Source of the DNA: Octopus sinensis
Lineage: Eukaryota
NCBI RefSeq assembly: GCF_006345805.1
Contig: NC_043004.1
Location: 5,394,001-5,458,000 of the forward strand
Reading direction: 5' to 3'
DNA: 64,000 nt
The position numbers and the translations under genes are program-made. Below are positions 25,890-52,366 of the stretch, piece after piece. The stretch's first letter is position 1. Every line of letters begins with the position of its first letter. Below the pieces are notes generated by a model, which searched no databases, was not told the DNA's origin, and worked only from the letters and a program-made list of their open reading frames with translations.

Positions 25890-26650
25890 TATGTGTACCC
25901 CACCATCATACATTCTGAACCAAAATAGCACTGGAATCATCTAGCTTTCTATGGCTATAAGTCCTCAGCATCAACTGGAGTTAATTCAGTCCATTAAACT
26001 CCATCACCTCCTCTCCAATATTTTTAAGACTAGTGTCCCAAAAACATGTACCGAGAGTGATAAAAGTTAAACATCCAGTCAACATCATGGTGTCTGCACT
26101 AATCATTAGTGATGGCGACGTTATGCTTCCATTCATCTTCTCACACAGCCTCAGACTCAACACAGAGGCTTACATCAAGTGCCTGCAGGAGGTAGTGCTG
26201 CCCTGGGTCAAGAAGGTGACTGCTGACCCTGTGACTGGTAACAGAACTCTTGCACCATGCCGCACAGGCAGAACCCAGTCATGGCTGTCAGACAATTTTT
26301 GTGACCACATCACACCTAACTCACCAGACTGCAACCGCAACCCCCTTGATTATTATGTGTGGGGTGCAGTTGAACAAGAGACCAACAAAACTCCTTGTAA
26401 CACCAAAGATGAACTGAAGGCAAGGATTATGGCAGCATTCACCAACTTAAACAACGAAAGAGTTGCAGGAGATTCCAAAGTCGTCTGAAGGCCATGGTTG
26501 AAGCCAATAGCAATTTTATTGAATAAATTTACTTTTAGTATTTCAAGATATTTTTATGTAATTTTGGTAAATATATGTTAAAATGAGATGTCTTTTTTAT
26601 TTTCATTTTTGCTTAACTTAGACGACAATATATTCATCGCACCCTGTATA
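25890..26650 (+). mobile_element. Tc1/mariner (maT-like) transposase pseudogene, 3' half with right TIR
   Basis: Peptides HPVNIMV...YIKCLQEVVLPW...NSPDC(N)PLDYYVWGAVE with frameshifts; end caccctgta followed by TA. A related terminus is near 18440-18620. Confidence 0.85.
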
Positions 26651-26988: not shown

Positions 26989-27725
26989 CTATTTTTTCTC
27001 CCCTTCTTTCTGTTTCGCAGACCTGGCAAATTGCTGGAAACAAGTTAAGGATTATTTTACATTTAAAAAGAAATTAAATGCATCAAAAATCACTTTGCTT
27101 TACAAAATAAACTAAACTCAGACAATGCCTTCTCTCTTCATTATCAAATGATGCTTACCATTTTTGATGGCATATAACACATACTTATTTAAAAAAAAAA
27201 AAGTTTCAAACAAATTACCCAGGGTCCAATATGCTAATTTGGGCCTATATTACATGCTTTAATCCTTTAACATGCTGATTACTCTGTCTAAATGTAACAG
27301 TTATTTGTTCTCATTGTTTTGAATGAATCGTGCATTATTTTGAAGCTTTGAGATTTTGATGAGGTGATTGTATATTTTTAGAATGACATTGCAGGATGGG
27401 TGTGAGAGGTCAGATTTTGATAGCTTGAATGTAGTTTATTTAGGCCAGATATGGCGAGTTTAAATGTACTTAATGCACTAAAAATTGTTTCTCCCTAAAT
27501 ATACTCTTTACTCTTTTACTTGTTTCAGTCATTTGATTGCAGCCATGCTGGAGCACTGCCTTTAGTCGAGCAAATCGACCCCAGGACTTATTCTTTGTAA
27601 GCCTAGTACTTATTCTATTGGTCTCTTTTGCCGAACTGTTAAGTTACGGGGACGTAAACACACCAGCATTGGTTGACAAGCGATGTTGGGGAAAAAAACA
27701 CAGACATACAAACACAGACATACAA

Positions 27726-27768
<43 letters not shown>

Positions 27769-28631
27769 CACACGATGGGTGTCTTTCAGTTTCTGTCTAC
27801 CAAATCCATTCACAAGGCTTTCGTTGACCTAAGGCTATAGTAGAAGACACTTGCCCAAGGTGCCACGCAGTGGGACTGAACCCGGAACCATGTGGTTCAT
27901 AAGCAAGCTACATGCTGAAATTAGAATGTGTCTAATATCCCCATGTGTTTTTTATACCATCAAATGCAGTAGATATGAGAATAGACCAGTATTTCTTAAT
28001 CTAAGAACATATTGTAGACCAAACAAAAAATTACTGACAAAGCTGAGAATGTTAAAAAAATTGTTAGAAGTAAAAAATTTAGAAAAAAAAAATCACAGAA
28101 AAAACTACTACTTACCTTGTTTTATTAATCATACTTCATTTTCATCCTTTTAACGTCCACTTTTTCATGCTTGCAGAATTTATTGAAGCAGATTTTCTCT
28201 AAAGATTTTGTTTGGGGACAATTATAGGTTAGCAACAGGAAGAGCATCCAGCTGCAGAAAAATCTGCCTCAACAAATTCTGTCAGACCCATGAAAGTATG
28301 GACATTAAAAACTATTATTGAGAGAATAGCAAATGCCATCTAAGTGACACTGGGGTACAAATATATGAAGCCCATAATACCCATCATGGCCACCCATGAT
28401 AAAACTTATTATTATTATTATTCAGTAACCTTATTTTTATCACATGCTTTCACTGCACTACTGAGCGCAGCTCTGTGTGCCTTGGGTATGTGCTGTGGTT
28501 TGTTGTGATGCTCTTATTTTTACTGTATTTAAAGTGTTTTATACAGGATGTGTGCGGTGCCTAATAGTGTTATGTCCTGGTGTTTTTGCTATGTATTTGT
28601 CTGAATATTTTTTTATCATTTCTAATGTGTC

Positions 28632-28662
<31 letters not shown>

Positions 28663-31600
28663 GAGTGAGAGTGCATGGGGTAAAATATACGAAGCCCAGT
28701 ATTCCCATCATGACTACCCGTCTGGTAAGGTACATGCATCACAACCATATGTGCACGACATGGTGATCTCATATCAAGATGAAACAGCACATGACCTTGC
28801 AGGTAGAGCCCAGTTAGAATTTTCTTTTGGTCGAGTAGCCCATCCCATTTAAAAGGTCCCTGAATAAGGATTGTTTAAGGATGCTGAACGAACTGCCCAT
28901 GTTTTCAAAGGTGAATTATTCAAACCTCTAAGAATTCCTTTCAACACATGGCTATGATGCTCCCCAACTACTTCTGCTCGTAATCAGAGATGCATATATC
29001 GTCAGCCACTAAGGGACATGGTCAACTGGTTATGGTCAAACAACTGACAGGCAAATCTGTGGTATTGAGCAGAATATTTGCTGTAGCCCTTTATTATTAT
29101 TATTATTATGATGATGATGATGATGAAAAGGATACTACTACCATAGGTCTGTTGTAGAGAACAAAGCCATTAGTATCTTCCAAAGCTACTTTGGCTACTT
29201 TTTCATTTGGAAGCGTTATAAAAGCCTGTCCTCGAATCCGTCCTTCTTGCATGAGTCTGATGTAAAACCTGAAATCAATTGAGATGTAAAGTTTGCAATC
29301 AAATGAAACATCTAAGGTTTGAGAGAGTAGATAGCAGACAATCCACAATGATAAATTCCATCCTAATCATTTGAATTTTTTTGTTACCATTCACAAAATT
29401 CTTTCAAACATAACATCTCAGTTCTCACCTCTTTTATTGTCTTCATAATAGGTTCTGCTCTCCAAGACTTTCTGGTTACATTTCATCTCTCATTTCAACA
29501 ACTGATATCTTTTATCTTCTACTTGTTTTACTTATTTCAATCATTAGACCGTGGCCATACTGGGGCACTGCCTTAAACTTTTAGTTGAACGAATCAACTT
29601 CAGGGCTTATTTTTTTTTAAAGCCTGGTACTTGTTCCATTGGTCTCTTTTGCTAAACTGCTAAGTTACTGAGATGTAAACACACCAACACCAGTTGTCAA
29701 GCAGTCGTGGGGGACAGACACAGACACACACATATAAGCATTTATATATCAGTTTCTATCTTATTTTTTTATTGCCCACAAGGGGCTAAACATAGAGCGG
29801 ACAAACAAGGACAGACAAAAGGATTAAGCTGATTACATCGACCCCAGTGTGTAACTGGTACTTATTTAATCGACCCCGAAAGGATGAAAGGCAAAGTCGA
29901 CCTCGGCGGAATTTGAACTTAGAATGTAGCGGCAAACGAAATACCGCTAAGCATTTCGCTCGGCGCGCCAACGTTTCTGCCAGCTTGCTGCTTTTATCAG
30001 TTTCTATCTACCAAATCTATCACAATGCCTGGGGCTATACTAGAAGACACTTGCTCAAGGAGCCATGCAGTGAAGCTGAATCCAAAACCACATCTCTCTC
30101 TCTCTCTCTCTTTGATGCTGTATGAGTGAGTGAGATTACAACCCTCCCCACTGAACAGGACACCAGTCCATCACAGGGTTAACGTCCTGGCTATTGCAGG
30201 ATTTCTCATTTACGGCCAAGTGGACTGAAGCAACATGAAATTAAGTGTTCTACTCAAAATTACAATGGACTGTCTAGTCCAAGAATTGAAACCACACTCT
30301 TACGATTATGTTTAATACTCAACCTTATTTGGTCTTATTGTTAATTTCAGTAGAATAAACTAGAGCGAGAGAACATGTTAAGAATTAAGGATTCAGTTTT
30401 AGACAATTATTTCAGTAATACTTACATGTTCCTTTCATCTTCATTTTTGGAATTGATGTAGAAACCAAATATCTTCCACAAGTCCTGAAAGAGGGAAAAG
30501 AAATGGTTTTGTTATTTTATTCATCATCGTCATCATCATCATTCAATGTCCACTTTTCCATGCTTGTATTGGTTAAACAAGGTTTATTGAAGCAGAGTTT
30601 TTTTATTATAGCTGGATGCCCTTCTTGCCACCAACTCTTACCTGTTTCTAAGCAAGGTGTTATTTTTCCATAGCTAGACATCTTATTCACAGAAGACAGG
30701 AAACAAACAACCTCGCTTGTATGATGATCGTGTTCTGCTCATTTACAACCATCAGGTGATGTCTAGACAAAGGTACACACACACACACGCGCGCACATAT
30801 GCCTGGCTTCTTTCAGTTTCATCATCATCATCGTTTAACGTCCGCTTTCCATGCTAGCATGGGTTGGACAATTTGACTGAGGACTGGTGAACCAGATGGC
30901 TGCACCAGGCTCCAGTCTGATCTGGCAGAGTTTCTACAGCTGGATGCCCTTTCTAATGCCAACCACTCTGAGAGTGTAGTGGGTGCTTTTACGTGCCACC
31001 AGCACGAGGCTGGTCAGGTGGTACTGGCAACGGTCACGCCCAAATGGTGTTTATTACGTGCCACCTGCACAGGAACCAGTCCAGCAGCACAGGCAACAAC
31101 CTCGCTCGAATGTTTTTTCATGTGCTATCAGCACAAGTGCCAGTAAGGCACGGAAGCCAGTTAGCTGCTCTGGCAACGATCACGCTCGGATGGTGCTCTT
31201 AGTGCTCCACTAGCACAGATGCCAGTCATCAAATTTAATTTCGCACAAGACATTGGTCAGCCCAGGGCTACAGAAGAGCACATTTGTTCAAGATGCTGTG
31301 CTGTGGAACTGAACCTAAAATCACGTGGTTGCAAAGCATGCTTCTTCACCACACAGTCATGCTTGCACCTAAATACATTTCTATAAAAAAGTAATATAAT
31401 ACTCAATACGCAAACTTTTACTTATATTAATACTGGCAAAGGGAAAAACGAAATAAAAAAAATATAGAAATAGTAAACTTACATCCTCAGTGACATGTCT
31501 GGAAAGATTTTTTATATAAAGTCGACTTGATGGTTCACCAGGTTGATAATTTTTGAAGACTGAAAGTTCTTTCATGTCTGTAATTAAAATAATTAAATAT

Positions 31601-31870
31601 CAAAATGGTGTGTTATAATACTATTCCACAAATACAAACAGCTATACCAACAATCCAACATACCTTCATCATCAGCTGCCCCACGGATATCATTATGGTT
31701 TTGACACCTGGGCAGTACCATTCAATTCGTTAGGAAGGGCATCTAGCTGTAGAAACCTTGCTAGATCAGATTGGAGCCTGGTGCAACCTCCTGGCTTGCC
31801 AGTTTTCAATCAAACCGTCCACCCCATGGAAAGCAGATATTGAACGATGATGATGAAACACAAACACACA

Positions 31871-31911
<41 letters not shown>

Positions 31912-34900
31912 TCTGTCTACCACATCCACTCACAAGGCTTTGGTTGGCCCACAGCTATAGTAGAAGACATTTGCCCATGGTGCTGCACAGTGGGACTGAA
32001 CCCAGAACAATGTGGTTGGGAAGCAAGCTTCTTAAACACACAACTACCCCTGTGCCTACAGTCTTAAAGAAAAAACCGGAGAACACATTGGAAAAATAGT
32101 TACAGCTGAATGCATTTGGCCACAGGTATACTCAACAGAAGCCGAGTTTTTGTATTTAGTCAGAGTAGGAAAGGTAGGGTCCGTGATCTACTTCAGGGCC
32201 TCTGAAACTGATGAGCGGAAGGGAAAAGAATGTGGAGTCAGCTTGAATCCTTACAATAAGGTACTCAAGGGCCAGGTGGTGGTATTTAATCAGGGACAGA
32301 TCAGCTTTGAAACTGGCCATATCTGGCCAAAATATTCTACCTGTTTTATGTTCAGACCAGACAGATCCAGCCTCCCACACCTATCTTACAAAGTGATTCT
32401 GAAAATAAGCAATCACATCATTGAAATCCCAAAGCTACAAGTTAATATATGATTAATTCAAAATCAATGTGAATAAATAAGCATTTCATGCTGAAAGAGG
32501 AATCTGAATGCTAATGGGTTAAGTCATCCAAGAACAGCAATGGTTTCTTCAATGAGCTTCTCTACAGTTTCCATCACCATTATTGTTTTAATGTCCATTT
32601 TACCATGCTTGTATGGGTCAGACAGAATTTGTTGAGGCAGATTTTCTATGGCCAAATTTCACTCACGAGTCTTTGACTGGTCCATCACAATGAAACTAGA
32701 GCTAAACACCAACATCTTCATGGAAAACAACTTGAATATTAAGACACATTATATTTCATGTTTTGAGTTATAAGTTATCAAAGACAAAACTCTTTGGCTT
32801 TCTTTTATGTAATGAATTCAATGAATTGACTATATAAAAAAAATGACTAAATCTGTTATGAAACACTAAAAACCCTTACCTTTCGATGATATCCTTCCTT
32901 GTCGGAGTTTCTCAGTTGATACAAACTGAATGTTTTTGAATTTATCATCTTCTTCTTCTTCCACAGGTAAATTAGGCTGAAAATAAAAATACAGGTATCG
33001 AAGGTAAAAGGGGAAAAAAGCAAAGATCTTTCTATATATTTATATAGATAATCATCATTATCATGGGTCAGACAGAACTTACTGATGCAGATTTTCTATG
33101 GCTGGATGCCTTTCCTGTTGCCAACCCCCACCAGTTTCCAAGCAAGGTAATATTTCCCCATGACCAGTTATGTTTATGCAGAATATTGGAAATGAATGAC
33201 ATTGATTTACAACAATCATACAATGTCAAGACAAGGAGAAACAAACATACACTCACGTATATACATCATCATCTAACGTCCACTTTCCATGCTGGCATGG
33301 GTTGGACAGTTTGACTGGAACTAGTAAGCTGGAGAGCTGTACCAGGTTCCAGTCTGATTTTGCATGGCTTCTACAGCTGGATGCCCTTCATAATGCCAAC
33401 CACTCCAAGAGTGTAATGGGTGCATTTTGTGTGCCATTTACATCAGTGCTTCTCAAACCATCTGATGTGGTGTACTGGCAGTTTTTTTTTCCAATGTGCC
33501 AGGTAACCGGTAATATTTCTTAGTAATATCAATTTACACCAGAAACAATATATAAACACCTTCCAGGCTGCAACAGTTTTTTTTTCAGCACATGGTCTCA
33601 GATCAAGTCACTTGCTATGCAAGTATATCTCCATAATATATATAATGAATATAATAAAAGTTGACAATTTTTAAAATCTTATATTCATTTTGTAAACAAA
33701 TAATACAATATCACATAAGCTGATAAGTTGCTTACTGCAGTGCATAAGGCAAAATCATTAAAATTCTGCTATCGTTTCTTTCTTTTCTGGAAACTTGCCG
33801 CATACTGGCTCACGAACCGGCACTGGTCCGCAGACCACCTCTTGGAGTAGCACCCTTTTACATGACACTGACAACAGCCACAACTATAATTTCATTCGGT
33901 TTGATGAGTCTTCTCAAGCACAACATATCGCCAAAGTCTCGGTCATAGACTCATTTCAGTTTCTGTCTATCAAGGTTTTGGTTGGCCTGGAGCTCTAGTA
34001 AAAGACACTTGCCCAAGATGCCATCAGGTGGAACTGAACCCAAAACCACGTGGTTGGGAAGCAAACTTCTGAACCACACATCTATACCTGCACCTAAATA
34101 ATAATAATATATTTTCAAAAGGTTCAAAATGATGATGATGATGATGATGATGATAACTCCACTGTCTCCATTTGCTTCCCTTGTTTCTTTATTATAGCAA
34201 TTGTCAATTGTCCAACATATGTAAATCTATAAAACAATTTCGGTCCAAATATAAGAGGGAAAAACTATTCATGAGGAAAGTAGCTCATAAAAAGGACCCA
34301 TGCTGGCACCACATACAAAATACCCAGTACACTCTGTAAAGTGGTTGGTATTAGGAAGGGCATCTGGCCACAAAAGCCATGCCAAAACACACGAATGGAG
34401 CCAGGTGCAGCCCTCCAGCTTACTAACTCCTGTAAAACCGTCCAAGTCATGCCAGCATACAGAACGGACAGTAGATAATGATGATGACTATGGACTACAA
34501 AGAAATTGGTGATATGCAGAAACACAGATAACAAATGGCGGATGAAGAAAACAAATAGGCAAAAGAGAAAAAAATAAGAATAAAAAATATGAAGAAAAAT
34601 ATTTACCTTTTCTAAAGGCGCAATCTTACCAAAACCTGAAGAATTCTGTTCCAGGTCTGTAGGTTCATTTGTTTTAAGTGTCTCTGATACAAAAGAAATA
34701 GTAATTTTAAATAATGTAGCAAAATGCAGATAAAACATCAAAAACAAGAGAAACATAGTAACAGAATTACTTAATGATAAAGTTGGATCATCAAAATCAC
34801 AGACTCTAAGAATATTACATCTTCAAGTTTCCTAACCATTTGGTCTTGGGATTCACTCACACTGTGTGGCACCTTGGGCAAGTGTCTTCTACTATAGCCC

Positions 34901-37900
34901 CAGGCTGATGAAGGCCTTGTGAATGGCTTTGGTAGATGGAAACTGAAAGAAGCCTGCTGTGTGTGTATGTGTGTGAGTGCATGAATATATCCTTGTCTTG
35001 GCATCATGCGATGGTTGTAAATTAGCCTCTCCATCATACAAGTGATGTTGTCCATTGAAAACATTTCTGGCCATGGATAAATACTACCTTACTTGGAAAC
35101 CAGTGGAAGTTGGTAACAGGGAAGGGCATTTGGCCATAGAAAATGAGCCTCATCAAATTCAGTCTGACCCATGCCAGCAACTAAAAGTGGACATTAAATG
35201 ATGATGGAATTTGCCATATGCAAGCTGGTTTAGCTCTGTGTCATCATCACCATTTAACGCACACCTTTCATGTTGGCATGGGCTGGATGGATTGGCAGGA
35301 TCAGACAAGCGCTGAAAAAGTGCATCATGTTCCAGTTGCCTTCTTTGACATTGTTTCTAAAATTCGACATTGTTCTAATTCCAGCCATTTTAAAAAGCTG
35401 GCTGAGTGTTTTTTTACCGTGATACCAGGACTAACAAGTCCCCTTAACTGAATGAGAATGTAATAGAGAGGGAAGCAGTTTTATGCTAGGTGTTGAGAAG
35501 TTAAAGTATGATAGAAGAGACAAAGTTTATTGGTTGCAGAGACGAAACACAGCAACCCTGCAAGGCAGTGAGCCCATGGAATCGTTACTGCACCAGGCAA
35601 AATGCTTAACAGCATTTCATCTGTCTTTACATTCTGAACTGAAATTCCACTGAGGGCGACATTGCTTTTCATTCTTTTGAGGGTTAATAAAGTAAGTACC
35701 AGATGAGCACAGGGGTCGATGTAATTGACTTACTTCCTCCTCTCAAATTGCTGGCTTTGTGCCAAAATTTGAAACCAATTATATAAGGGTGGGTGAGAGT
35801 AATTGGAAACAGATAAAAATGGCAGTACTAAAGTACCAGAGCAGACACTCAAGGAATAGCAAGGTGAATACAAGAGGGAGTAGGAACCTAAGAACAGGAA
35901 AAGTAGATAAAGGCTGCAAGAGCGGGGGTAGGGGGTTAGGATGAATGTAGTGAATGGTGAACTAGGGTGAAGGAGTGGATGGTGGTAAATATAATGAATG
36001 GATGTCAAGAGAATCGGCTCAGGGGAGAGGAGGTGATGACAGTCAGTAGAGAAAGGGTGAAATGTAGCAAATTACTAATAGCACAGTAAATAGGGGAAGG
36101 ATGAGAGATAGGGAGGTGATGGGTGGAGGAGGATGGGTAAAGATTACAAGAGTGTGGGGGGAGGGGAGTGAAAGATATCTAGTGATGGGGGTGAAAGTGG
36201 TTACATAAGGGTGGATGTAGTGAACGGCAAACAAAGTTGGTGGGGATGGTTGATGATTGAGACAGTGTTCAGAATACGGTATGGATGTCAATAGGAAGTG
36301 GTTCAAAGGAAGAAGGAGAAATAATTGCTGGTAAAGGAATGAAGATCAATGGACAGAAAGCAGTCTTGTGATTTACTTTGTCTTTGGTGACAATGAAACT
36401 TTGTAAAAGAATGGTTTATTGTCAAAAGGTCAAGCAACATTATGTCTACCTGTATCCATATTTGTTGTTAAGTCCCCAGAAGGTTCTTCAACAGCAACTG
36501 TGTCAGGTAACTTGATGGAGATTTTCTTTGATTGTAGATTTGCCTGGTCAAAAACATCACGAGCAGAATACGCAGGTAGGGTTGAGGGTAATTTAATAGA
36601 TTCTGTCATACTCTGCTTCAAAGCATTCCAGTCTTGTTTTAGCTTCTTCCTCTTCTTTAGAACTCGCTTTCTTGAGGGCTCCACTGCATGAGTTAGTCTG
36701 TAAAGAAACAACCGGAAAGATGTTGCAAAATTGGTTTCATACTATTGTAATAGTCAACTATTTGATTCAATAGAGTTATAGAAATAGCTACAATAGGTAT
36801 GGGTCTAGTAAAGACATGACGAAATTAAAAGAATAATTATTGCTAAAACCGTACTTCATAATGATGTAAAGCAAGAATTTGCTTACATAAGCATTTCAGG
36901 CGTCGAACTACGGGGATATGCAAGAGTGTTTGTACATGTATTAGGTATGATAAAATATACAAATAGGCTATGAGTAAATCATCATCATCATAACACTCAT
37001 TGTCCATGTTGGACAGTTTGACTAGGCTGGCATGCTGGAAGGCTGCGCCAGACTCCAGTCTGATTTGGCATAGCTTTCTATGGCTGGACACCCTTCTTAA
37101 TGCCAACCACTTTGAGAGTGTAACGGGTGCCTTTATGTGCCACCGGCACAGGTGCCATTTGTGTGACACCTGGGTGCATCTATGTGCTACCGGCATGGGT
37201 GCCACTTTGCTTGACACCAGTATCTGCTATGACTGCCATTTTGCTCGCCTTGATGAGTCTTATTCTCAAGCATGACATAATGCCAAAGGTCTCGGTCATT
37301 GCCTCCATGAGGCCCGACAATCAAAAGGAACTCAGCCACTTTGCCTCTATGAAGCCATAAAAAGGAAAAAAGTGGACCATTATGAAAACAAGTTGCTGAT
37401 CCTTAACCCAAAGTAAAGTACTTCAGGCCATCATCATCATCATTGTTGTTTAACATCCATTTTCCATGCTGGCATAGGTTGGACTTCATAAACTGAGAAT
37501 ACTAGAAGAATAAGCTGGACTTCATAAACTGAGAATACTAGAAGAATAAGCTGGACTTCATAAACTGAGAATACTAGAAGAATAAGACTAAGTACTCAGA
37601 GTAACATAAACAAATAAAGGTTTATCAATTATTATACAACATAAATCCTTGATTTATTAAAATCATCACAGCCTCTAGAGGGTATGTCATAATTACCAAA
37701 TTGCAATTAAGAGTAATTCTCATGAGGAGGGGAGATAATCTCAAGAATCAAGATCTGTCCGAAGTCAATGTGCCACTAAGGAAAAGGACAAGCTTGCTGT
37801 CTGGAGATAAGAGGACACCATGGACACATGTCTCTGGCTCAATGGGCATCATCAACATGGCAATTGTCCAACCTTATCTCCAGTAGATGAAAGGACTTAT

Positions 37901-40900
37901 ACAAAAATAACACATTTATGGCCTGGGTATTTTACATAAATTAAACAAAATGAGTTATTAGAGTAAAATGGATAAGATGAACATTAAATAATAACAATGA
38001 TGCATTATATTGGAACAAAGCCACAATTTTACAGAGTTAATCATTTGTAGTTAATTCAAAGTGATTGCCAGTACACAAGTAAAAATAATTTTGTTGATCT
38101 TTCATGGTGGTGATGATGATGATGAACAATAATGACAGCAATGACACTGAAGATGATTACAACAATAAAGACAACAACCATAATAAATAAAAAAGACCAA
38201 ACCTTTGGCCTTCAGAATCTGATTCTAACTCAGATTCTTCAGTTGTTGAAACTTCCATTTCTTCCATACTTAAATTATCTGTCTCTTGGGGTCCACTGTC
38301 ATTTGGCTGAAAATCATAACATACACCTGTAAAGTCTGTGATATTTATATTAAGTTAATTTTATAGTGCAAAACATTTTATATGAACTTAAGTTAATTAT
38401 AACAAGTTGGGAAGGCACATGGCTCAGTGGTTAGCACGTCGACCTTACGATCATGAAGTTGTGAGTTCGAATCCTGGACCAGGCTGCGTGTTGTGTTCTT
38501 GAGCAAGACACTTTATTTCACGTTACTCCAGTTCACTCAGTTGTAGAAATGAGTTGTGATGTCACAGGTGCCAAGCTGTATCGGCCTTTGCCTTTCCCTT
38601 GGATAACATTGGTGGTGTGGAGAGGGGAGGCCGGGATGCGTGGGCGACTGCTGGTCTTCCATAAACAACCTTGCCCGGATTTGGGCCTGGGAGGGTAACT
38701 TTCTAGGTGCAATCCCACGGTCAGTCATGACCAAAGGGGGTCTCAATTATATCAAGTTAATTCCACCACTACCACCTTACTCTGTTTGCATGAACCGGTA
38801 AAAGCAGCCTTTTTTGACCTACTAAATATAGCAGTCAAATTCCTTCAAATAAAACTCTACAGTCTTAAAAGGGAAGAACAGTGTATTTTGTGTCCCAGAT
38901 ATACAAAAATAAAAGATAATCATAACTAGAATGCCTTTGGTCACATATTGACTTGGTCAGCTGACCAGGGGCTAAAACATAAACACATTCTTATATTGAG
39001 TTTATTATGGACAAAATAACGAGAATATTTTTCTTAGAATATTCATATACATTATAATGTGGTGCAGGCATGGCTGCGTGGTAAAGAAGTTTGTTTCCTA
39101 ATCAATTGCATGGTCTTAGGTTCAGTCACACTGTGTGACACCTTGGGTGTCTTCTACTCTAACCCAGGGCTAACCTAAGCCTTGTGAGTGAATTTGATAG
39201 ATGGAAACTGAAAGAAGCCTGTGATATGTATATGTGTGTGCATGAAAATTTATGTTTGCATCTTCTTGTCATGACATCGTGTGACAGTTGTAAATGAGTG
39301 TCACTGGCCTACAAGCAGTGTCATTCATTTTCAATATTCTGTGAAATCATGTCTGGCCACAGACAAATATTGCCTTGCTTGGAAATAGGTGAAGGTTGGT
39401 GAAAGGAAGGGCATAAAGCTGTAGGGAACAAAAATGCAAGCAACAAAAATGATGACAACAACGATGATGATGGATACAATGTCATGCAGTGAGACTGAAC
39501 CCAGAGCATCACTACAACGAAAACTTTTCAACTATTCAGCCATTTGTTTTGTATTTTTATCTTGTTTAGTCAGGAGAGAAGGCAGTGCCTGTCACCCTTA
39601 ATAAGACTTCCAAGACTATAGGGAAGAAGGAAGAGAGTATCTTCAACCCAGAGACTTGACCTGAGTGGACTCTACTGAAGGCATCCAAGGTATCAGATCA
39701 TCGTCATCATCATCATCATCGTTGTCATCGTCATTGTCATCACCACCATCATCGTCGTCGTCATCATCATCAGCATTGTTTAATGTCTGCTTTCCATTTT
39801 GACATGGGTTGGATGGTTTGACTGAGAACTGGCAAGCCAGGTGGCTGCACCAGGCTCCAATCTGATCTGGCAAGGTTTCTACAGCTAGATGCCCTTCTTA
39901 ACACCAACCACTCTGAGAGTGTAGTGGGTGCTTTTTATGTGTCACTGGCATGGGAGCCAGTCAGGAGGCACTAGCATTGACTATGCAGTCAGGTGGAACT
40001 AGCCATGGTAGGATCTGAACTCAGAACACAGAGAGGCAGAACAAATACTGCAAAGTATCCAGTCTTATGTTCTTACATCTCTGCCACAAATTGGTTCTTT
40101 TATATTTTTTCATCAACCCTGAAACAATGAAAGGCAAAGTTGGTTTTGATGGGATTTGAACTCAGACTGCAAAGTGTCAGAACAAACATTGTAAGGCATT
40201 CATCTGATGCGCTTCACTGTAATGCTTGAACCACTTAAGGACAGACTCATACACTAATACACACCCACTCACACACTTTAATACAGGGATAGCCAACCTG
40301 CGGCCCACTTGATACTTTCTTGAACAAGACATTAAAAAATTTTATCAACAGTTAAAGATTGCAATGAAAAGTGAAACATGATAATATTTCATGTTGAATC
40401 AATGATCATTCATTCATTATTTTAATAAGAAAGCAAAATGCTTTCAATTCTGTCAGTATACAAGTGACCCTCAAAAGACTTCCTGTGATTAAAGTGGCCT
40501 GCAATGTAATACAAGTTGGCCAGGCCTGTTCTAATACATGTACATTGCAGAAACTCACATAACCAAACGTGCCAAGACAAACACAAACAAACTTCAGAAA
40601 GATCTATTTTTCAGATTTTGTATACTTTTTTACTTGTTCAATCAGTTGACTGTGACCATGCAAGAGCACCGCCTTTAGTCAAGCAAATTGACCTGAGAAC
40701 TTATTCTTTGTAAGCCTAGTACTTATTCTATCGGTCTCTTTTGCCGAACCGCTAAGATACAGGGTTGTCAAGTGATGTTGGTGGGAGAAACACAGACATA
40801 CAAACATATACACACACTTACATATATATATATATATATATAATACATATATATATATATATCACGTCACGTCATCACATCACGTGACCGACCAGTCCAT

Positions 40901-42275
40901 CAGATGTAGTTACACATCGCTGGTCACAATGTGTTCGCATTGTTTTAGCCTTCGAATGATGCTGGCTAAGCGAGCAGGCCAACAGAAGAAAGAGTGGGAG
41001 AAAGAGTGGTGATAGAGTACAGCAGGGATCACCACCCCCTGCCGGATCCTCGTGGAGCTTTTTAGGTGTTTTCGCTCAATAAACACTCACAACGCCCGGT
41101 CTGGGAATCGAAACCGCGATCCTACGATCGCGAGTCCGCTGCCCTAACCACTAGGCCATTGCGCCTCCATATATATATATATATATACATATATACAATG
41201 GGCTTCTTTCAGTTTCCATCTACCAAATCCACTCACAAGGCTTTGGTTGGCCTGAAGCTATAGTAGAAGACACTTGTCCAAGGTGCCATGCAGTGGGACT
41301 GAACCTGGAACCATGTGGTTCATAAGCAAGCTACTTACCACACAGCCACTCCTGCACCTATCGTATTAAAATGATTTACAAAAGAATTTACTTACAATCG
41401 GTGGAGTTTGAGTAACACTTCCAAACGGTGCAGGAATATTCATTTTGTTCATTAAATGAAGAACCTGATGACGAAATAGTTTGTTTTTAGAGAAAATATC
41501 AATTGGAATTTCAAACAAAACATTCTTATAGTAGAAATTTTAAAATCTTTGTAATGTGCAGAAAGAAAAAAAATTATCAAATTGCTTCTGTCTTTTACAT
41601 GTTTTAGTCACCAGAATGCGACCATGCTGAGCACCACCTTGAAGAACTGACTCCAATACTCATTGCTTTTTTTTTTAAAGTCTGGTACTTATTCTATCAG
41701 TCTCTTTTGCCGAATGGCTAAGTTACAGAGACATAAGAACAAACCAACACCAGTTGTCAAGTGGTGGTGGGACAAACACAAACACAGATATTTTATATAT
41801 ATATATAATTAAGAGAAATAACCTCTATTAAGCAATCCAATAGTAAAAGACATTATCTACACCATATAGAAAAAATGCTTATTTAATATAGTGATTTTTG
41901 AATAATATTTATTATAGTATATTTAAATTTTTTCTATATGGTGTAGATAATGTCTTTCACTATTGAGTTACTTAATAGAGGTTATTTCTCTTAATGATAT
42001 ACATATATATTGTGAAATTTTTAGAAGTGCTATATTGAATTTTTCCCTGTAAGTTTGGAATTATATTCCCTATTATTATTATTATATATATAATTTCCAG
42101 GATTTAGGAGAACCAGATACTTAAATAGTCAAGTACCAAGGTTGGGTTGGTGATAGCACTATTGTAGACAAACAGTATTTAAGGACAAATATATACTTAC
42201 TAAAGTAAACGCTTTATCAATAAAAAAACATATCTGAAACAGCTGTAGTGAACAACCCACCTGTTGTTATTTATT

Positions 42276-42342
<67 letters not shown>

Positions 42343-43316
42343 GAGTGAAATCTTCGAAACATGTGTCGGAAGTAAAAGTATTTGAATTATACCTGCGTTA
42401 AACTCCATTTATTTATATATATATATATATACATATATATACATATACATATATACATACATTTACCCAAAGTTCCAGTCAGTAGATTGAGCCCAGAAGC
42501 ATGTGGTTGGAAAACAAGCTTCCTTCCACACACCCATGCCTGCACCTATAAATATGTATATTCTGTGCAGCTACTTTATTGCTCTTTGATTCAAAATTTG
42601 AATTTCTAATCCAGCCATGTGATCGAGAAATGATTATCTCCCTTACAATAACTGACCACCAGGACACACCACATGTTTCAATAATTAGTATTATAAATCA
42701 TTTCATCCGGAGAACTCAAAGGAGATAAAGCTATAAGCAGCTTTATCTACTTATTATACTCAGATCTTCTGTGAATATGATAGATGTGCTACTACAGGTA
42801 ACCTTCCACTTTTTTCTGTCCATGGGGGTTTTTGCATTCAATATTCTACAATGCCATCATTTATACCAATATCTACTTGAGTTCCATAGTTGAAATATTT
42901 CATAGCTCTCAAGCACAGAAAATGGATGTTAAATGACAATAATGATAATGATGATGATGACAATGGTGATCCTATTTATATCAGCATGAAAAAAAAAAGG
43001 TACAAAGCGAAAACCAATTTTCATGTCAAATATTCACAGAGTGGACAAAGAGATGAAGATCAAGAATAGGTTTTTGAACTACATTTCATACCTGGACATA
43101 AAATTTTGGACACGATGCCAAAGCATTGGCAATGTTGGTAAGAATCGATACAGTTGGTGGTGGGTATATGTAACTGAGACGGGGGTTTGCACAGTACTGG
43201 ATTCTGGAAAATAAAACATAAATATTTTACTTGTTTCTAGGGTTGGATTCAGTGTACAAGTTATTTATACAATTCAAAATGTGTTGCACAAACAGTATAA
43301 GTTGTATGTATGTGTG

Positions 43317-43382
<66 letters not shown>

Positions 43383-45145
43383 TAGATAGATAGATAGATA
43401 GATGTACATAGATAGATAGATAGATACATAGATAGATAGATATCATCATCATCATCATCATTGTTTAATGTCTGCTTTCCATCCCGGCATGGGTTGGACA
43501 GTTTTTGACTGAGGACAGGGAAGCCAATAGGCCGCACCAGGCTCCAATCTGATCTGGCAAGGTTTCTACAGCTGGATGCCTTTCCTCATGCCAACCACTC
43601 CAAAAGAGTAGTGAGTGTCTTTTACATGCCACTGGTACAGGTTTACATGCCACTGGCATGAGTTTATGTGCCAGATATATGTTTTATATATATGTATAAC
43701 ATTCAATGTGCCGGTGACACGTAAAAGCACCGTCCGTTCGTGGCCGGTTGCCAGCTCTGTCTGGCCCCGTGTCGGTGGCACGTAAAAGCACCATCCGTTC
43801 ATGTCCGTTGCCAGCATCGCCTGGCCCCGTACCGGTGACACGTAAAAGCACCATCCGTTCGTGGCCATTCGCCAGCTCTGTCTGGCACCTGTGCAGGTGG
43901 CACGTAAAAAACACCCACTACACTCGCGGAGTGGTTGGCGTTAGGAAGGGCATCCAGCCGTAGAAACACTGCCAGATCTGACTGGGCCTGACGAAGCCTT
44001 CCAGCTTCACAGACCCCAGTTGACCCGACCAACCCATGCTAGCATGGAAAACAGACGCTAAACGATGATGATGATGATGATGATTCAATATCATTATGTA
44101 CTACATAAATACTGCATGGCTGTGTGTGTGTGTTTGGACCTTCTTGATGCTTTAATGCATGAAGGGTCAGCTTGACAGCAGAGTCTTGGTTTGCTCAATA
44201 TAATAATATTCATCATTCAAGTCCAATGGCGAATATTGTTGTAATGGGCATGGTTTGTGCAGAACCAATCCCAGTTCCTCATCATCATCATTTAGCATCT
44301 GTTTTCTATGCTGGCATGGGTTGGACATTTTGACAAGAACTAGTAAGCGGGAGAGCTGCACCAGGCTCCAGTCTGTTTTGGCTTGTTTTCTATGGCTGGA
44401 TGCCCTTCCTAATGCCAACCACTTCACAAAGTGTTCCAGGTGCCTTTAATGTGTCACTGGCACAGGTGCCTCTAGCATGTCACCGGAACAGGTGCCCTTA
44501 GCATGTCACTGGCACAGGCGCCTTTTACATGTCACCAACACAAGTGCCTCGTGCCATGAGAAAATGAGCACCAGCCATATAAAGACGTAGCTCCCCACCT
44601 CTCTTTCACTCTCTGTGGCTGTCACATCCTGAATGTGTTGTTGGGTCAAAGGGTAGGAAAGTCAAGAGGATGTCTATTCCTGCTTATAGACTACGAAGAT
44701 TTATGAAAACAGCATGGAACATGTTTCCAACTCCTACCCTTTCACACATGTCTACTGACTCTTTATATGTGGCTGTGGTAAGTAGCTTACTTACCAACCA
44801 CATGGTTCCAGGTTCAGTCCCACTGTGTGGCACTTTGGGCAAGTGTCTTCTACTATAGCCTTGAGCCAACCAAAGCCTTGTGAGTGGATTTGGTAGATGG
44901 AAACTGAAAGAAGCTCGTCGTATATATATGTATGTGTGTGTGTGTGTGTGTTTGTGAGTCTGTGTTTGTCCCCCACCCCCAACATTGCTTGACAACCGAT
45001 ACTGGTGTGTTTGCTTAGTGGTTCGGCAAAAGAGACTGATAGAATAAGTACTAGGCTTACAAAGAATAAGCCCTGGGGTCGATTTGGTCGACTAAAGGCG
45101 GTGCTCCAGCATGGCCGGAGTCAAATGACTGAAACAAGTAAAAGA

Positions 45146-45178
<33 letters not shown>

Positions 45179-47340
45179 CTTTTACTGCTTACTGTCAGTT
45201 TTTCGAAATCAGTGGCAGACGCCACTAGAAAAACTCTTATATATTTGCAAGGAAGCCTTCACTTTCGTCACATCCTGGTGGTTACCGCCCGTTGACAAGG
45301 GACAAATATCCCGAAACTAGTCTGAGCGTATCACTCAGGCTTGCGAGGAAGGGATGGCCTCCCTTTGCAAATACTTCAAGGGCACTGATATGGTGTCTAA
45401 AGCCAGCTAGAGACGACGATCTCTTGGGGCTATAAAGCTACAGTAACACCCCCTCCCCTATGTGGTTAGCCATAAGATGGCTTCTATACTTTATATATAT
45501 ATATATTCCATTTTTCTTGTTTCAGCTCAGAGCTGCGGCCATGCTGATGCACGTTTAAATAGAAGTAAAATGGCCTTATTAAGGGATAAAAAATATCCAA
45601 TGAATTATTGGTTTGTTGCCTACTATTTTTTGTGAATAGCAATATTCCTAAAATAATAGGTTTAAGTATAAATCTTGGTTTATAAATATTCAAATTAAAA
45701 TTCAGAAAATGGAGATGTAACATTAATACAATTTATTAACTGGAAAAATTCAACATGTTCTCTTACAGTTAAAGTAGGAGACAATTGTCCAAGGTGTCAC
45801 ACATCGGGACTGAACCCAAGACCACATGGTTGGCAAGCAAGCTTCTCAACCACACAGCCAAGCATGTGCCTATTGTGATATATGCAATATACAAAACTTG
45901 AATTCATAATAAACACAACAACCAACATCACAGATAAAATATTTCCCACAACCAATACACAGTGCCATATAAATGACAGCCTAAGGGCATCCAGTCGTAG
46001 AAGCCATACCAAAGCAGGAAATGGAACCTGGTGCAGCTCTTTAGCTCACCAGCCCCCATCAAACATCCAACTCATGCCAGTATGACATTAAATAATAATG
46101 ATGATGGTGATGAACATCTGTATAACAAAACAACTTACCCCCATTTCAAATAGCCTTCATCAATGTGAGGTTTTGGTTCAAATGTCTTCTCTTTTGTTCC
46201 TTGTTTAGAATTTCTTTTGTCATCCTTCTGTGGTTTTCTGTCAAACACCAACAATACAAAAATTACCGTTATTAAAATACGTTTCTCATAAATAATTTTT
46301 CTCATTGGCTTTTGTTCTTTGTTTTTTCAGATAAAAATAGCAGTTCAGCAAAAGATACTGATAAAATAAGCAGCTGGCTTAAAAATAAAAGTACTAGGGT
46401 CAATTCATTCCACTAAAATTTCTAAAAGGAAGTGTCCCAGCATGGCTGCAGTCAAATGACTGAAGTAAGATAAAACATCCTTTTGCGTCTGTCCACTTAA
46501 GAAGCTTGCTTCCTAACCATGTGGTCTTAGGTTCAATTCCACTGCACAGCACCTTAAGCAAGTCACTTGTGTTATAACTCCAGGATCACCAAAGCATTGA
46601 GAGTGGATTTGATAGATGCAAACTAAAAGAAGACCATCATATAGACATACACACGTGCACACACAGACACGTGTGTGTGTACGTTTGTCTATGTGTGTGT
46701 GTGTTTGTGTATATATACATACACACACATACTGAGTGAAGTATAATCATTTGACTTAACTACTACTCATTTGTAGAGCAAAATGAAAAACAAAATCTCT
46801 TCCATGAGCAACATGGTGGCTCAACCTACTAGAAATAATAGTTGAATCTCTCTCAAATCAATACTTTACTATTCTAAAAATAGGAAGGACTCACAGGAGA
46901 GTGTAGTCCTGAGTATACAAAAAAGGATGTGATAGTCATGATTGGAACATGTTTGATCATAAATCTGTTCAGTTAGCGCTAGTCAATGACTTAGCAACAA
47001 AAACAACACTTCCTATTACAACTTCCCTACAGCTAAAGTAGGAGACAGTTGTCCAAGGTGTCACACAGCGGGACTGAACCCAAGACCACATGGTTGGCAA
47101 GCAAGCTTCTCAACCACACAGCCAAGCATGTGCCTATTGTGATATATGCAATATACAAAACTTGAATTCACAATAAACACAACAACCAACATCACAGATA
47201 AAATATTTCCCACAACCAATACACAGTCCCATATAAATGACAGCCTAAGGGCATCCAGTCGTAGAAGCCATACCAAAGCAGGAAATGGGACCTGGTGCAG
47301 CTCTTTAGCTCACCAGCCCCCATCAAACATCCAACTCATG

Positions 47341-47386
<46 letters not shown>

Positions 47387-50300
47387 ATTATAGAATATAT
47401 TCCAGAGCTTGCATATAGTTTCAATGTTAAATACCTCTCATTATCAATAAATTTTGGAAAGTGTTCCTGCTGGGATTTTCTGGAAAATTCTATAACAAGT
47501 TTCTTGTCAAACACTTCCAATTGATGGAGTCTTTCTAAAGCCTGCAAGAATGAATGAATGAAACAATTTAGCTAGACCAGAATGTAAATATGAAATACTA
47601 CAAGACAAAACAACTTTCAGTTTAAATGTTGAAACACAATTTCAAGAACAAAATTTGCTAAACAGGTGCAAAACCCAATCCAAAATGTTTTTATCAGGTG
47701 AATGTTCAAAACGTTTTCAATGCCCCAACAAAATTTTAGGGGTTACACTTGCACCCCCTGCACCTGACCCTATGTGTTTAAATGATACAGGCACAGGTGT
47801 GGCTATGTAGTTAAGAAACTTGTTTTGCAACCAGGTAATCAGAGTTCAATCTTGCTATGCAGATCTTTGGGCAAGTGTCTTCTACTATAGCTCCAAGCCA
47901 ACCAAAACCTTAACAGGGGATTTGATGGATAGAAACTGAAAGAAGCTCGTCATACATGTGTGTGTGTATGTTTGTGTGTGTGTGTGCACACCCTTGTTTA
48001 GATATCATGTGATAGTTACAAATGAGCATCATCAAATGAGGTTGTTTGTTTCCAGTCTTCTGTGAAAAACATGACTAGCTGAGGCAAAAATATTACTTTG
48101 CACCAAAGGATGTGGGTTGGTGATAGGAAGTGCATCTGGCCATAGAAAATCTACCTCAACAGATTCCATTTGACCCATACAAACATGAAAATGCAGACAT
48201 TAAAATGATGATAGTGACTGACACACTGGAACACATCATGTCTAACAACCTTTCCAAAGAACATCATCATCATCATCATCGTTTAATGTCCGCCTTCTAT
48301 GCTGGCATGGGTTGGACGATTTGACTGAGGGCTCGCGAACCAGATGGCTGCACCAGGCTCCAATCTTGATCTGGCAGAGTTTCTACAGCTGGATGCCCTT
48401 CCTAATGCCAACCACTCCGAGAGTGTAGTCGGTGCTTTTACGTGTCACTGGCACGAGGGCCAGTCAGGCGGTACCCACAACGGCCACTTATTATTAATAT
48501 CCCAAAATCTACATAAAAACAGATTTAATTTTCATAACTAAGAAATGCTTCAATATTGAAGAGTTCAAGTCTTTTGACAAGATTCAAGTACAACAGCCTA
48601 AGAAGTTGCCACTTTGTATATATGTGATTCCTTGTCTTGATATCATGTGAAATTTGTAAACAAGTGTCAATGTCGTATAAGCAGTGTCTTTCATTTCCAT
48701 TCTTCAATGGGAAAATATTACTTTGCTAGGAAACAAGTGAGGTTTGGTAAGAGGACAGCATCCAACCACAGAAAAATGTGTCCCAACAAATTCCATCTGA
48801 TCTATGTGAGCATGAAAATGGAGACATAAATATGATGATTTGTATATATGATATTTGTATTATTTAATGATGTCAAATGTATGTCATTTCCATTGACTTA
48901 CAAAGCTTTGATCAACTTGAGGCTATAGTAGAAGACACTTGCTCAAGGTGCCATGCAGTAGGACTGAACCTAAAGTGATGGTTGAGTAGGAGACTTCTCA
49001 CCACACAGCCATGCCAGTGCCAATTTGATATATATATATAAGTGAAAGTTTTGTGTAAAAATATCAACATTGTATGATGGATAACATAATAATCTTTTCT
49101 ACTATAGGCACAAGGCCTGAAATTTAGGGGGCAGAGGCCAGTCGATTAGATCCACCCCAATACACAACTGGTACTTAATTTATCAACTCCGAAAGGATGA
49201 ATGGCAAAGTCGACCTCGGTGGAATCAGAACGTAGCGATGGGCAAAATTATGCTAAGCATTTTGTCCAATGTGCTAATGATTCAGCCAGCTCGCTGCCTT
49301 ATTATGGATGATGGATGGATAATATAACAATGACATACAGCATAGATGTAACAAATATCACATAAATGTGACAGGGGAAAATGATATAGAAATGGCTTAA
49401 ATGCATATCATATTTGCTATAGAAAACTAATGTGATAAATATAAAATGCATTAGAATTGCAAAATGGGACTTAAGTGTGACAAAAAACAAAATTAATTCA
49501 TCTAAAATCATCAGCATTTAATTGATAATATTAAAAGTAACAAGGTAAAATCTTGAGCACAAAAGTATATAATTTGATACTTTAAACTTACATTTTTGGC
49601 AGCTTCTTCATCACTAAATGTTGCAAATGCACAATGCTTCTGGAAAAACAAAAAAACATGTGTAAATATTTTTGAGTTTGAGAGGACAGTGTAAAACTAA
49701 GATACAAAAAATATTGTATCTTAGTTAAGATACAAGATAATACAGAGAGAATTTTGTAATCGTAAAAAAAAAAGTTGGAATGTCCATGAAGATAAAATTG
49801 GACAACCAACACATGGGTCATCAGATCATACCAGCTGCAAGAGTTTCATAGAATTTCTAGGTCACTGAAGTGGATGTCATCGACATAGATATACCATGTC
49901 CACCTCCCGGTTGCTTTGGCCCTGATAGTGTTTCTCTGTGGGTATGCTTCATTGAGTGACAAAGGTAACTGGTGCATTCATTGAGAAAAAATTAGAGTCT
50001 ACGCAAGTCAGTGCTCTACTGACTTGCATTCAAAAAGCATGGGATGCTTTTAATTTTATGTTGATTTAGAGGAGTACAAATGGGTTCCAAATCTTCAAGA
50101 TATGGTACCTTTCAAAAAACAGACTGGTTTTCTATCTGGCTAAAGATTAACTCTACAAAGTATGCAGTGAATATTCAGCTTTGTGAGTTCCTGTAATACA
50201 TGAAAAGTAAGGTAAGCACACTTACCTACCCACCCACTGGATCTGGTTAGTATGAATATAAAGCGGGTAGAATGTTTGAGCCAGATACAGCTAGTTTAAA

Positions 50301-50677
50301 TAATGACTGGCTCTGAGGGACTACCCAAGTAAAATAGGCATAAAAGGGGGTCCACAGGTAAAAAAATGGTTGCGAACAAGTGTAATAAAGGGACACAACA
50401 AAATACCTTGTGGTATTTTGTCTGCTGCTGTTCCACTACTTTTGCTGAGAATAACCTAGCTACATATGTCCTGGCCTAGACAAGGCAATGGCTGAGCCTT
50501 TATAATCAAGCTGACAACCTAGAAAAGAGAAATGGAAACAATTCAAGCACTCACCATTGAATTATCTAACACTTTAACTCTGATGGCTCCAAAATGAAAC
50601 AGCAAGTTTTCTTTATCTTCATTGGTGAGCTGGGATGGTAAATGCCGTACCAGCAATGTACTGTTTATATCAGCCAT
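26989..50677 (-). CDS. RNPC3: RNA-binding region-containing protein 3 (U11/U12 snRNP 65K), two RRMs, 471 aa
   Basis: Coding exons in transcript order: 50677-50555, 49639-49592, 47541-47435, 46237-46139, 43203-43092, 41464-41396, 38306-38203, 36697-36450, 34683-34607, 32976-32880, 31577-31483, 30484-30426, 29268-29136, 27033-26989 (TAG); total 1416 nt in one frame. Motifs: [100 protein letters not shown]. Confidence 0.96.
27034..29135 (-). other. U12-type (minor spliceosome) GT-AG intron of RNPC3
   Basis: 5' splice site GTATCCTTTT (29135-29126); branch motif TCCTTAAC (27051-27044) with branch A about 11 nt from the terminal AG (27035-27034); phase 0 between V-V and Q-F-A-R. Confidence 0.95.
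37480..37587. repeat. 36-bp tandem repeat, 3 copies
   Basis: Unit tggacttcataaactgagaatactagaagaataagc repeated head to tail. Confidence 0.95.
38410..38745 (+). mobile_element. tRNA-derived SINE family C
   Basis: Head tggctcagtggttagc (A box) ... gagttcgaatcc (B box) followed by a GC-rich body. Confidence 0.75.
40860..41170 (-). mobile_element. tRNA-derived SINE family D inserted into a family A SINE
   Basis: Minus-strand head ggcgcaatggcctagtggttagggc...ggtttcgattccc; (GTGAT)-like tail; flanked by the two halves of a family A copy (40620-40810, 41190-41360). Confidence 0.75.
41808..41995. repeat. Foldback with 68-bp arms in TA context
   Basis: 41808-41875 and 41928-41995 are reverse complements with a few mismatches. 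Confidence 0.9.
44765..45147 (+). mobile_element. Full-length tRNA-derived SINE family A (ggctgtggtaagtagctt head, internal TA/TG microsatellite)
   Basis: A/B-box head, central (TA/TG)n, 3' end gactgaaacaagtaaaagag. Copies at 1-93, 6040-6445 (-), 18200-18430, 27505-27905 (-), 51165-51490 (-), 52130-52530 (-), 55805-56335, 56715-57065 (-), 57900-58265 and others. Confidence 0.88.
45278..45334 (+). ncRNA. Candidate minimal type I hammerhead ribozyme
   Basis: Core UUGACAA (45292-45298), stem II GGGA-caaata-UCCC, GAAA (45313-45316), palindromic CUAG loop, UC cleavage site at 45321-45322, and imperfect stem I (45278-45291 with 45323-45334). Confidence 0.6.
45761..47339. repeat. ~320-bp direct duplication (about 45761-46078 and 47022-47339)
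   Basis: Near-identical chimeric blocks; they give the twin ORFs 45797-46012 and 47061-47276 in the track. Confidence 0.92.
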
Positions 50678-51539: not shown

Positions 51540-52331
51540 TTAGCGTCCGCTTTCCATGCTAGCATGGGTTGGACGGGTCAACTGGGGTCTGTGAAGCTGG
51601 AAGGCTTACGTATATTGCTGGCTATGTATGGCAAATAACTGGTCAAGTGTTACTGACAGTTTTACATCGACAATGACACCTGGCAGTCGAATATTAAGAG
51701 CTGAAGACAAGAAATCTCTAGACCAGTGTTTCTTCTTCTTCTTATTATTATTATTATCATCATCATCATCTAAGGTGGCGAACTGGCAGAATCGTTAGCA
51801 TGCCAGGCGAAATGCTTAGCAGTATTATTTGAAGTAGGACGTGGGGTAAAAATGGTTAAAAAACACTTCTCTCTAGACTATTATATAATTGAAAAAATGG
51901 ACCAATAAGTACAGTTACTTAAATGAGCAAATTATAACTGATCATACTAACACTGTTGGTTTGTGTTGAACAGTCTTATACCAACGATTTGCTTATGCAT
52001 TGGTACCTATCAAGTGCTATACCAGTAGTCTTCAATCATGCTCCATGTGTCTCTTGGGGTACCACATAAGTGTTTGTCATTAAAATTTATCAGCAATAAA
52101 TTGGTTATACATCAACAATACGCAAAATATTTTACTCTCTCTTTTACTTGTTTCAGTCATTTGACTGTGGCCATGCTAGAGCACCACCTTTAGTTGAGCA
52201 AATCAACTTCAGGATTTATTCTTTGTAAGCCTAGTACTTATTCTATCAGTCTCTTTTGCCAAACCGCTAAGTTACCGGGACGTAAACACACCACTATCAG
52301 TTGTCAAGCGATGTTGCGGGGACAAACACGG

Positions 52332-52366
<35 letters not shown>

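Follow-up and report, generated by a model that had tools for sequence, protein, structure and literature searches.

Can the minor spliceosome be supplied with one of its own core proteins without first splicing that protein's message? The question is raised by a 64 kb stretch of the Octopus sinensis genome, referred to below as the window, which corresponds to assembly GCA_006345805.1, record CM016866.1, with an exact match across the intron discussed here. Its minus strand encodes RNPC3, the U11/U12-65K protein (65K), which is the bridge of the U11/U12 di-snRNP (small nuclear ribonucleoprotein). The last coding intron of this gene, intron 13, is very probably the octopus orthologue of the known RNPC3 minor (U12-type, GT-AG) intron. 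Since 65K bridges the same di-snRNP that would recognise this intron, a complete 65K messenger RNA needs pre-existing minor-spliceosome activity. This positive dependency of complete 65K on minor splicing is real and follows from the anatomy of the gene; in our judgement it comes with the inheritance of a very old conserved intron and does not represent a tuned feedback device.

The RNPC3 gene and its last coding intron

The gene model was built from minus-strand stop-to-stop fragments running from 50.7 kb to 27.0 kb, joined by hand at GT-AG borders, and comprises 14 coding exons encoding a protein of 471 aa (Table 1). The protein is identical to the NCBI entry 'RNA-binding region-containing protein 3 [Octopus vulgaris]' (P0020; 100% identity over 100% of the length), and its best matches among solved structures are those of the human 65K C-terminal RRM (5obn/3egn, E 2e-27), with the paralogue RBM41 behind (3e-17), which bears out a first-pass annotation that had named the gene as that of 65K. 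Pfam RRM_1 falls on residues 381-455. The features by which RNPC3 is recognised are all present: an N-terminal RRM, the central VLHLMNKMN(L/I)P region and a C-terminal RRM closer to 65K than to RBM41. A homologue search with the full-length model as query returned orthologues from molluscs to mammals that match it over 98-100% of its length, with 81% identity in Argonauta RNPC3 and 40-50% in RNPC3 of bivalves, brachiopods, amphioxus and vertebrates.

Intron 13 lies in phase 0 between V457 and Q458 (PMVV/QFARSA, the slash marking the junction). On the minus strand the donor reads CCT ATG GTA GTA/GTATCCTTTTCA (in wider context AAC AGA CCT ATG GTA GTA/GTATCCTTTTCATCATC) and the acceptor AATCCTTAACTTGTTTCCAG/CAA TTT GCC AGG TCT GCG, or, through to the stop codon, AAATGTAAAATAATCCTTAACTTGTTTCCAG/CAA TTT GCC AGG TCT GCG AAA CAG AAA GAA GGG GAG AAA AAA TAG. 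The donor GTATCCTTT matches the U12-type 5' splice site /RTATCCTTT at nine of nine positions, and TCCTTAAC matches the U12-type branch box at eight of eight. The second A of the box (27045) stands 11 nt from the last base of the intron and 12 nt from the first base of the exon, within the published optimum of 11-13 nt between branch point and 3' splice site (Turunen et al. review, PMC3584512). The gap between box and AG is 9 nt (TTGTTTCC-AG), too short for a long polypyrimidine tract, yet pyrimidine-rich. Donor, branch box, distance and codon split had all been proposed in the first-pass annotation, and proved exact in coordinates and motifs.

The other 12 introns of the gene have U2-type donors (GTAAGT, GTGAGT, GTATGA, GTATTT, GTTTGG, GTAGAC or GTAAAT), and inspection of all 12 revealed no U12-like branch box; octopus RNPC3 has no U11-type site other than the intron 13 donor. 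The intron 13 junction is used by the octopus annotation, in the form of the NCBI protein model.

Table 1. Coordinates of the RNPC3 gene, of intron 13 with its splice signals, and of the repeat within it.
Feature	Position in window	Strand	Remarks
RNPC3 coding region	26989..50677	-	14 coding exons, stop TAG
Exon 1	50677-50555	-	hand-joined model
Exon 2	49639-49592	-	hand-joined model
Exon 3	47541-47435	-	hand-joined model
Exon 4	46237-46139	-	hand-joined model
Exon 5	43203-43092	-	hand-joined model
Exon 6	41464-41396	-	hand-joined model
Exon 7	38306-38203	-	hand-joined model
Exon 8	36697-36450	-	hand-joined model
Exon 9	34683-34607	-	hand-joined model
Exon 10	32976-32880	-	hand-joined model
Exon 11	31577-31483	-	hand-joined model
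Exon 12	30484-30426	-	hand-joined model
Exon 13	29268-29136	-	most of C-terminal RRM; aligns to human 65K C-terminal RRM structures 5obn/3egn
Intron 13 (last coding intron)	29135..27034	-	2102 nt, phase 0, GT-AG subtype U12-type
U12-type 5' splice site GTATCCTTT	29135..29127	-	donor G at 29135
SINE-like interspersed repeat in intron 13	27496..27911		~410 bp; outside splicing signals
U12-type branch-point box TCCTTAAC	27051..27044	-	candidate branch adenosines 27046, 27045
3' splice site AG	27035-27034	-	read from sequence
Exon 14, coding part	27033-26989	-	14 residues + stop TAG; end of beta-4 + basic tail

Placement of the motifs against chance

The motifs themselves are not enriched in the window. 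RTATCCTT is found 4 times where 5.4 occurrences would be expected, and TCCTTAAC 5 times where the expectation is 2.1; with these counts at chance level, enrichment was rejected as evidence, and placement alone is informative. RTATCCTY occurs once on the minus strand of the whole window, at the intron 13 donor, and among the 1430 GT dinucleotides of the gene strand the same donor is the only one that reads GTATCCTT. For a single intron, the joint chance that ATCCTT follows a donor GT and that TCCTTAAC falls in a window of 12 positions ahead of the acceptor comes to about 9e-8; over 13 introns it rises to about 1e-6. The call of a U12-type intron goes beyond chance because of this placement and because the same motifs recur at the same codon boundary in orthologues of several phyla. 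Such cross-phylum conservation settles the question of chance for intron 13.

The same codon boundary in other organisms

For the comparison of intron positions, annotated proteins were mapped exactly onto their own genomic loci, and host contigs from metagenomes were added. The 20 distant representatives of the octopus protein covered arthropods, a nematode, a bivalve and two fungi, with no cnidarian or plant among them; a fungal homologue then served as query to reach plants, cnidarians and an oomycete.

The first-pass annotation had placed a vertebrate minor intron 13 here, which would make the octopus intron ancient rather than new. The hamster gene confirms both points: its coding intron 13 (620 nt) interrupts PMVV/QFARSA and is U12-type, with GTATCCTTT at the donor and GCCTTAAT 15 nt before the exon. 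U12-type introns occupy the same boundary in amphioxus (410 nt; GTATCCTTT, with TTCCTTAAC 13 nt before the exon), in the cephalopods Argonauta (936 nt) and O. vulgaris (2122 nt), both with GTATCCTTT and with TCCTTAAC 12 nt before the exon, and in the scorpion Centruroides (2897 nt; GTATCCTTT, with GCCTTAAT 13 nt before the exon). The metagenomic contigs add four coral-like sequences with GTATCCTT and with TTCCTTAAC 15 nt before the exon, which are 93-96% identical to the Montipora RNPC3 exon, and one mammal-like sequence with GTATCTTT and with TCCTTAAC 12 nt before the exon. The pattern common to the set is GTATCCTT(T) at the donor and a (T/G)CCTTAA(C/T) box 12-15 nt before the exon, and these motifs are conserved regardless of intron length (365-2897 nt). 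Given the taxonomy inferred for the coral-like contigs, the U12 state would be at least as old as the cnidarian-bilaterian ancestor.

Elsewhere the same site carries an intron of the other type, or none. U2-type introns are found in Rhizophagus irregularis (MVI/QFS; GTGAGT...ACTAAT...TAG; 71 nt) and in Pythium oligandrum (WVV/CFR; GTGTGT...CTGACAG; 64 nt); both rest on annotated gene models, in which the flanking codons fit the conserved protein. The hemipteran Homalodisca, the moss Physcomitrium and one compact eukaryote have no intron at the site, and several further contigs encode the stretch uninterrupted. Position, not type, is what the octopus intron has in common with those of the glomeromycete fungus and the oomycete, and the position may be much older than the U12 state. 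Loss has occurred in lineages that still encode 65K, and so has a change of type, whichever its direction.

Some observations were made in passing on homologous gene models. Four database proteins (P0009, P0179, P0335, P0248) read into the intron, for example as KPLVVVSFLF or, in a Spizellomyces model, as KPMVIVSNYLL. This suggests that gene callers often mishandle the splice site of RNPC3 intron 13; the case of Spizellomyces, a chytrid, may point to an intron of GTAAGT type in the same place. In one coral-like metagenome contig of 3120 nt (L020), the last three coding exons are fused at 2240-2461 (DLKFIFGRY...PMVIQFARSAKAKD-stop) and preceded by a polypyrimidine-AG acceptor, so that the contig represents either a retrocopy or a metatranscriptomic RNA whose splicing was incomplete. 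Intron 4 of hamster RNPC3 (L001 ~10250-10294) contains TTCCTTAAT about 22 nt before its acceptor; its donor, GTTTGC, is not U12-like, and the box is probably a chance look-alike.

Predicted consequence of failed splicing

Reading past the intron 13 donor yields VSFSSSSSS-stop, as GTA TCC TTT in the phase of this intron always encodes V-S-F. The product lacks the end of beta-4 (QFA) and the basic tail, in agreement with the expectation of the first-pass annotation that failed splicing removes the end of the C-terminal RRM. A human mutation provides a measure of what this loss entails. R502X removes the tail from the R of QFAR onward, three residues downstream of the intron 13 site, leaves the fold largely intact, and in vitro abolishes binding to the hairpins of U12 and U6atac (PMC5824358). 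From the octopus read-through product the region deleted by R502X is missing, together with three more residues. It is predicted to be non-functional, since it lacks all that R502X removes and R502X abolishes RNA binding; the prediction is well grounded, though indirect.

Transcripts of both forms are represented in a cuttlefish. In the cluster that includes RNPC3 of Acanthosepion pharaonis (P0022/P0158, Logan transcript assemblies), the full-length products carry PMLVQFARSA in many contigs. A further product (P0159, 4 contigs) is identical in residues 1-448 and then continues as PMLV/VSFLKIFISAFKTKF, that is, VSFLKIFISAF...; in its RNA all twelve U2-type introns are gone and intron 13 alone is retained, a pattern expected of a slowly spliced U12 intron. 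The spliced junction is carried by cuttlefish transcript assemblies and by coral-like transcript contigs.

The sequence of events would be as follows. Binding of U11 at GTATCCTTT and of U12 at TCCTTAAC, 11-12 nt from the AG, would mark the intron for recognition by the U11/U12 di-snRNP, and the minor spliceosome would remove it and join V457 to Q458. The retained form, deprived of the last beta-4 residues and the basic tail, would not bind U12 and U6atac small nuclear RNA, and the retained RNA would likely be kept or degraded in the nucleus. The direction of the coupling is then positive, as follows from the anatomy: less minor splicing means less functional 65K. The splice signals, position, phase, orthology and read-through product are established in this analysis, and we infer that the minor spliceosome removes intron 13 in octopus. 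Several points speak for caution here. The use of 29135/27034 in octopus is supported by annotation and homology, and the assignment of the coral-like contigs to Cnidaria by sequence identity only. The cuttlefish product P0159 may be nascent pre-mRNA and not a regulated product. Any intron in the octopus 3' untranslated region (UTR) would bear on nonsense-mediated decay (NMD).

Search for USSE and the nature of the coupling

In vertebrates, 65K levels are tied to the minor spliceosome by another route. As described in PMC5473595 and PMC8329584, the USSE is a tandem of U12-type 5' splice site sequences in the 3' non-coding region of 65K that binds U11; it activates an upstream U2-type 3' splice site, giving rise to a nuclear-retained isoform, and so exerts negative feedback. 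It sits just downstream of the exon that follows the RNPC3 U12 intron. We scanned for exact and 1-mismatch tandem patterns. In hamster, which served as positive control, the scan recovered a perfect tandem GTATCCTTTCTTGTCGTATCCTTTT (L001 26584-26613) about 1.1 kb past the RNPC3 stop, the published USSE. No USSE-like tandem was found in or near octopus RNPC3 on the gene strand of the whole window, including the 27 kb downstream of the gene; the sole gene-strand pair is weak, formed by two 1-mismatch 8-mers at 6347/6330, some 20 kb downstream of RNPC3. The same scans revealed no USSE in the loci of Argonauta, amphioxus and scorpion. An Rfam scan of the window returned no RNA family.

These results bear on whether the dependency is more than inherited. 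A rate-limiting U12 intron could have been kept in order to couple the supply of 65K to minor-spliceosome activity, acting through positive feedback or as a detained-intron switch, and this might be the ancestral form of control in animals without a USSE. Several observations are in keeping with such a tuned autoregulatory sensor: the persistence of the U12 type at the site from coral-like sequences to mammals, the cuttlefish transcript from which every U2-type intron has been removed and intron 13 has not, and the absence of a USSE from octopus, Argonauta, amphioxus and scorpion, against its presence in the hamster control. Slow or rate-limiting splicing is reported for U12 introns (in the account given in PMC5473595), and a minor intron acts as a sensor in SRSF10 (PMC7244321). 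The hemipteran and the moss, with no intron here, and Rhizophagus and Pythium, with U2-type introns, nevertheless keep 65K, and with it presumably a minor spliceosome, without a U12 intron at this site. U12 introns in general typically keep their type and position over long times, and positive feedback by itself does not provide homeostasis. Minor introns occur in about 3% of human genes (PMC6865273), and we estimate at about 20% the chance that one among the seven specific proteins would contain such an intron by accident. Tuning of this kind has perhaps a modest chance of being correct, and inheritance of an old intron remains our preferred explanation. The feedback link, which the first-pass annotation had itself marked as an inference, keeps that standing.

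A more specific form of this proposal seems to us improbable, if worth stating: in animals without a USSE (cephalopods, amphioxus, chelicerates, corals), the terminal U12 intron of RNPC3 would be an ancestral sensor by which minor-spliceosome abundance is set, and the vertebrate USSE would have been added later, as negative feedback on a positive loop already in place. Were it true, transcripts freed of every U2-type intron but detained at intron 13, like the cuttlefish isoform, would constitute a nuclear reserve, released when U11/U12 activity becomes available.

It is very unlikely that intron 13 is a U2-type intron resembling the U12 type by chance, or one that the major spliceosome removes in vivo. 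Its termini are GT-AG and its last 11 nt (CTTGTTTCCAG) fairly pyrimidine-rich, which speaks for this reading, but the donor GTA/GTATCC is a poor match to the U2-type consensus, the two motifs would fall together at these positions with a probability of about 1e-7, and the motifs are kept across phyla despite lengths of 365-2897 nt and an octopus interior that is largely repeat-derived. The least credible reading is a USSE-like negative feedback in which U11 binds GTATCCTTT without splicing and activates an upstream U2-type 3' splice site: the sequence is the same as in USSE units, but it is present in single copy with no tandem pair, stands at a frame-preserving exon border with a matching branch box and AG, gives spliced products in relatives, with annotation and homologous mRNAs implying use of the 29135 donor, and the scan for tandem near-matches in and near RNPC3 was negative.

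Repeats and neighbouring sequence

The interior of intron 13 is mostly repeat and microsatellite, with (TCA)n(TAA)n just after the donor, (ATA)n at about 28640 and (TA)n(TG)n at about 27720-27780. A blastn search of the window with the intron as query found the repeat listed in Table 1, which resembles a short interspersed element (SINE), in at least 10 copies at 66-92% identity; three of them are near full length, at 80-82% identity (e.g. 6039-6420, 44782-45160, 52133-52513).

On the plus strand, an open reading frame (ORF) at 23113-23382 encodes a VPS9 domain (Pfam E 4e-10) and resembles the 3' part of an ALS2 (alsin)-like gene that runs towards RNPC3 in convergent orientation. Argonauta has an alsin-domain gene in the same place (L003 19979-21248), so the neighbourhood of RNPC3 is conserved. 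Two ORFs downstream of RNPC3, at 26033-26488 (+, 151 aa) and 25422-25838 (-, 138 aa), resemble by eye the tails of a mariner-type transposase and of a LINE (long interspersed element) reverse transcriptase; the resemblance is unconfirmed, with no Pfam hit at E 0.01.

Significance and comparison with known systems

Mutations in RNPC3 cause growth-hormone deficiency, and the present results provide useful context for diseases of the minor spliceosome. A core minor-spliceosome protein needs the minor spliceosome for its own mRNA, and would have carried a U12-type intron since at least the divergence of cnidarians and bilaterians. This is relevant to the debate on what preserves minor introns, a regulatory role or neutral inertia. 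No current view is overturned: intron 13 is the orthologue of an already catalogued minor intron, correctly recognised and not new, and RNPC3 is already described both as a minor-intron gene and as a minor-spliceosome component. The modest new detail consists of the phylogenetic pattern, the invertebrate RNPC3 genes without a USSE, and the cuttlefish transcript retaining intron 13 alone.

RNPC3 is named as a minor-intron-containing gene (MIG) in PMC6865273, citing Olthof et al. 2019, on account of its vertebrate minor intron, and Octopus sinensis is included in the pan-eukaryotic survey of minor introns by Larue and Roy (PMC10639083). Within the passages of the 65K regulation and disease literature reached by keyword searches, the consequences of the RNPC3 U12 intron are not discussed. 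In the zebrafish clbn mutant s846, as summarised in PMC11347168, a T>A change in rnpc3 'intron 13' creates a 3' splice site that lies 10 nt upstream, and the allele is null in function. If the numbering matches that of hamster, this mutation would lie in the orthologue of octopus intron 13.

The closest counterpart of the octopus intron is the vertebrate RNPC3 minor intron. The two share the PMVV/QFARSA boundary, phase 0, the GT-AG U12 subtype, the GTATCCTTT donor (in hamster) and a branch box 12-15 nt from the exon. They differ in that the human exon after the intron is penultimate, a further intron following in the 3' UTR (PMC5824358), in that hamster has a USSE about 1.1 kb past the stop and octopus none, and in the interior of the octopus intron, which is unrelated and largely repeat-derived. 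The USSE, which in the accounts of Verbeeren et al. (2010, 2017; PMC5473595, PMC8329584) autoregulates both U11/U12-65K and U11-48K, likewise ties 65K to the U11/U12 level through a U12-type 5' splice site sequence. There, however, a tandem pair not used as donors exerts negative feedback, whereas octopus has a single genuine donor, and the coupling would be positive. In SRSF10 (PMC7244321), too, a minor intron links the output of a splicing factor to minor-spliceosome activity; it does so by competing major and minor sites and binding of its own protein, while in octopus no competing sites or alternative products were identified. Human R502X arises from a nonsense point mutation and not from a splicing event, and in human the presence of an intron further downstream makes its mRNA a target of NMD (PMC5824358). 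By losing the C-terminal tail that starts three residues past the intron site, it provides the protein-level proxy for what failed removal of intron 13 would produce.

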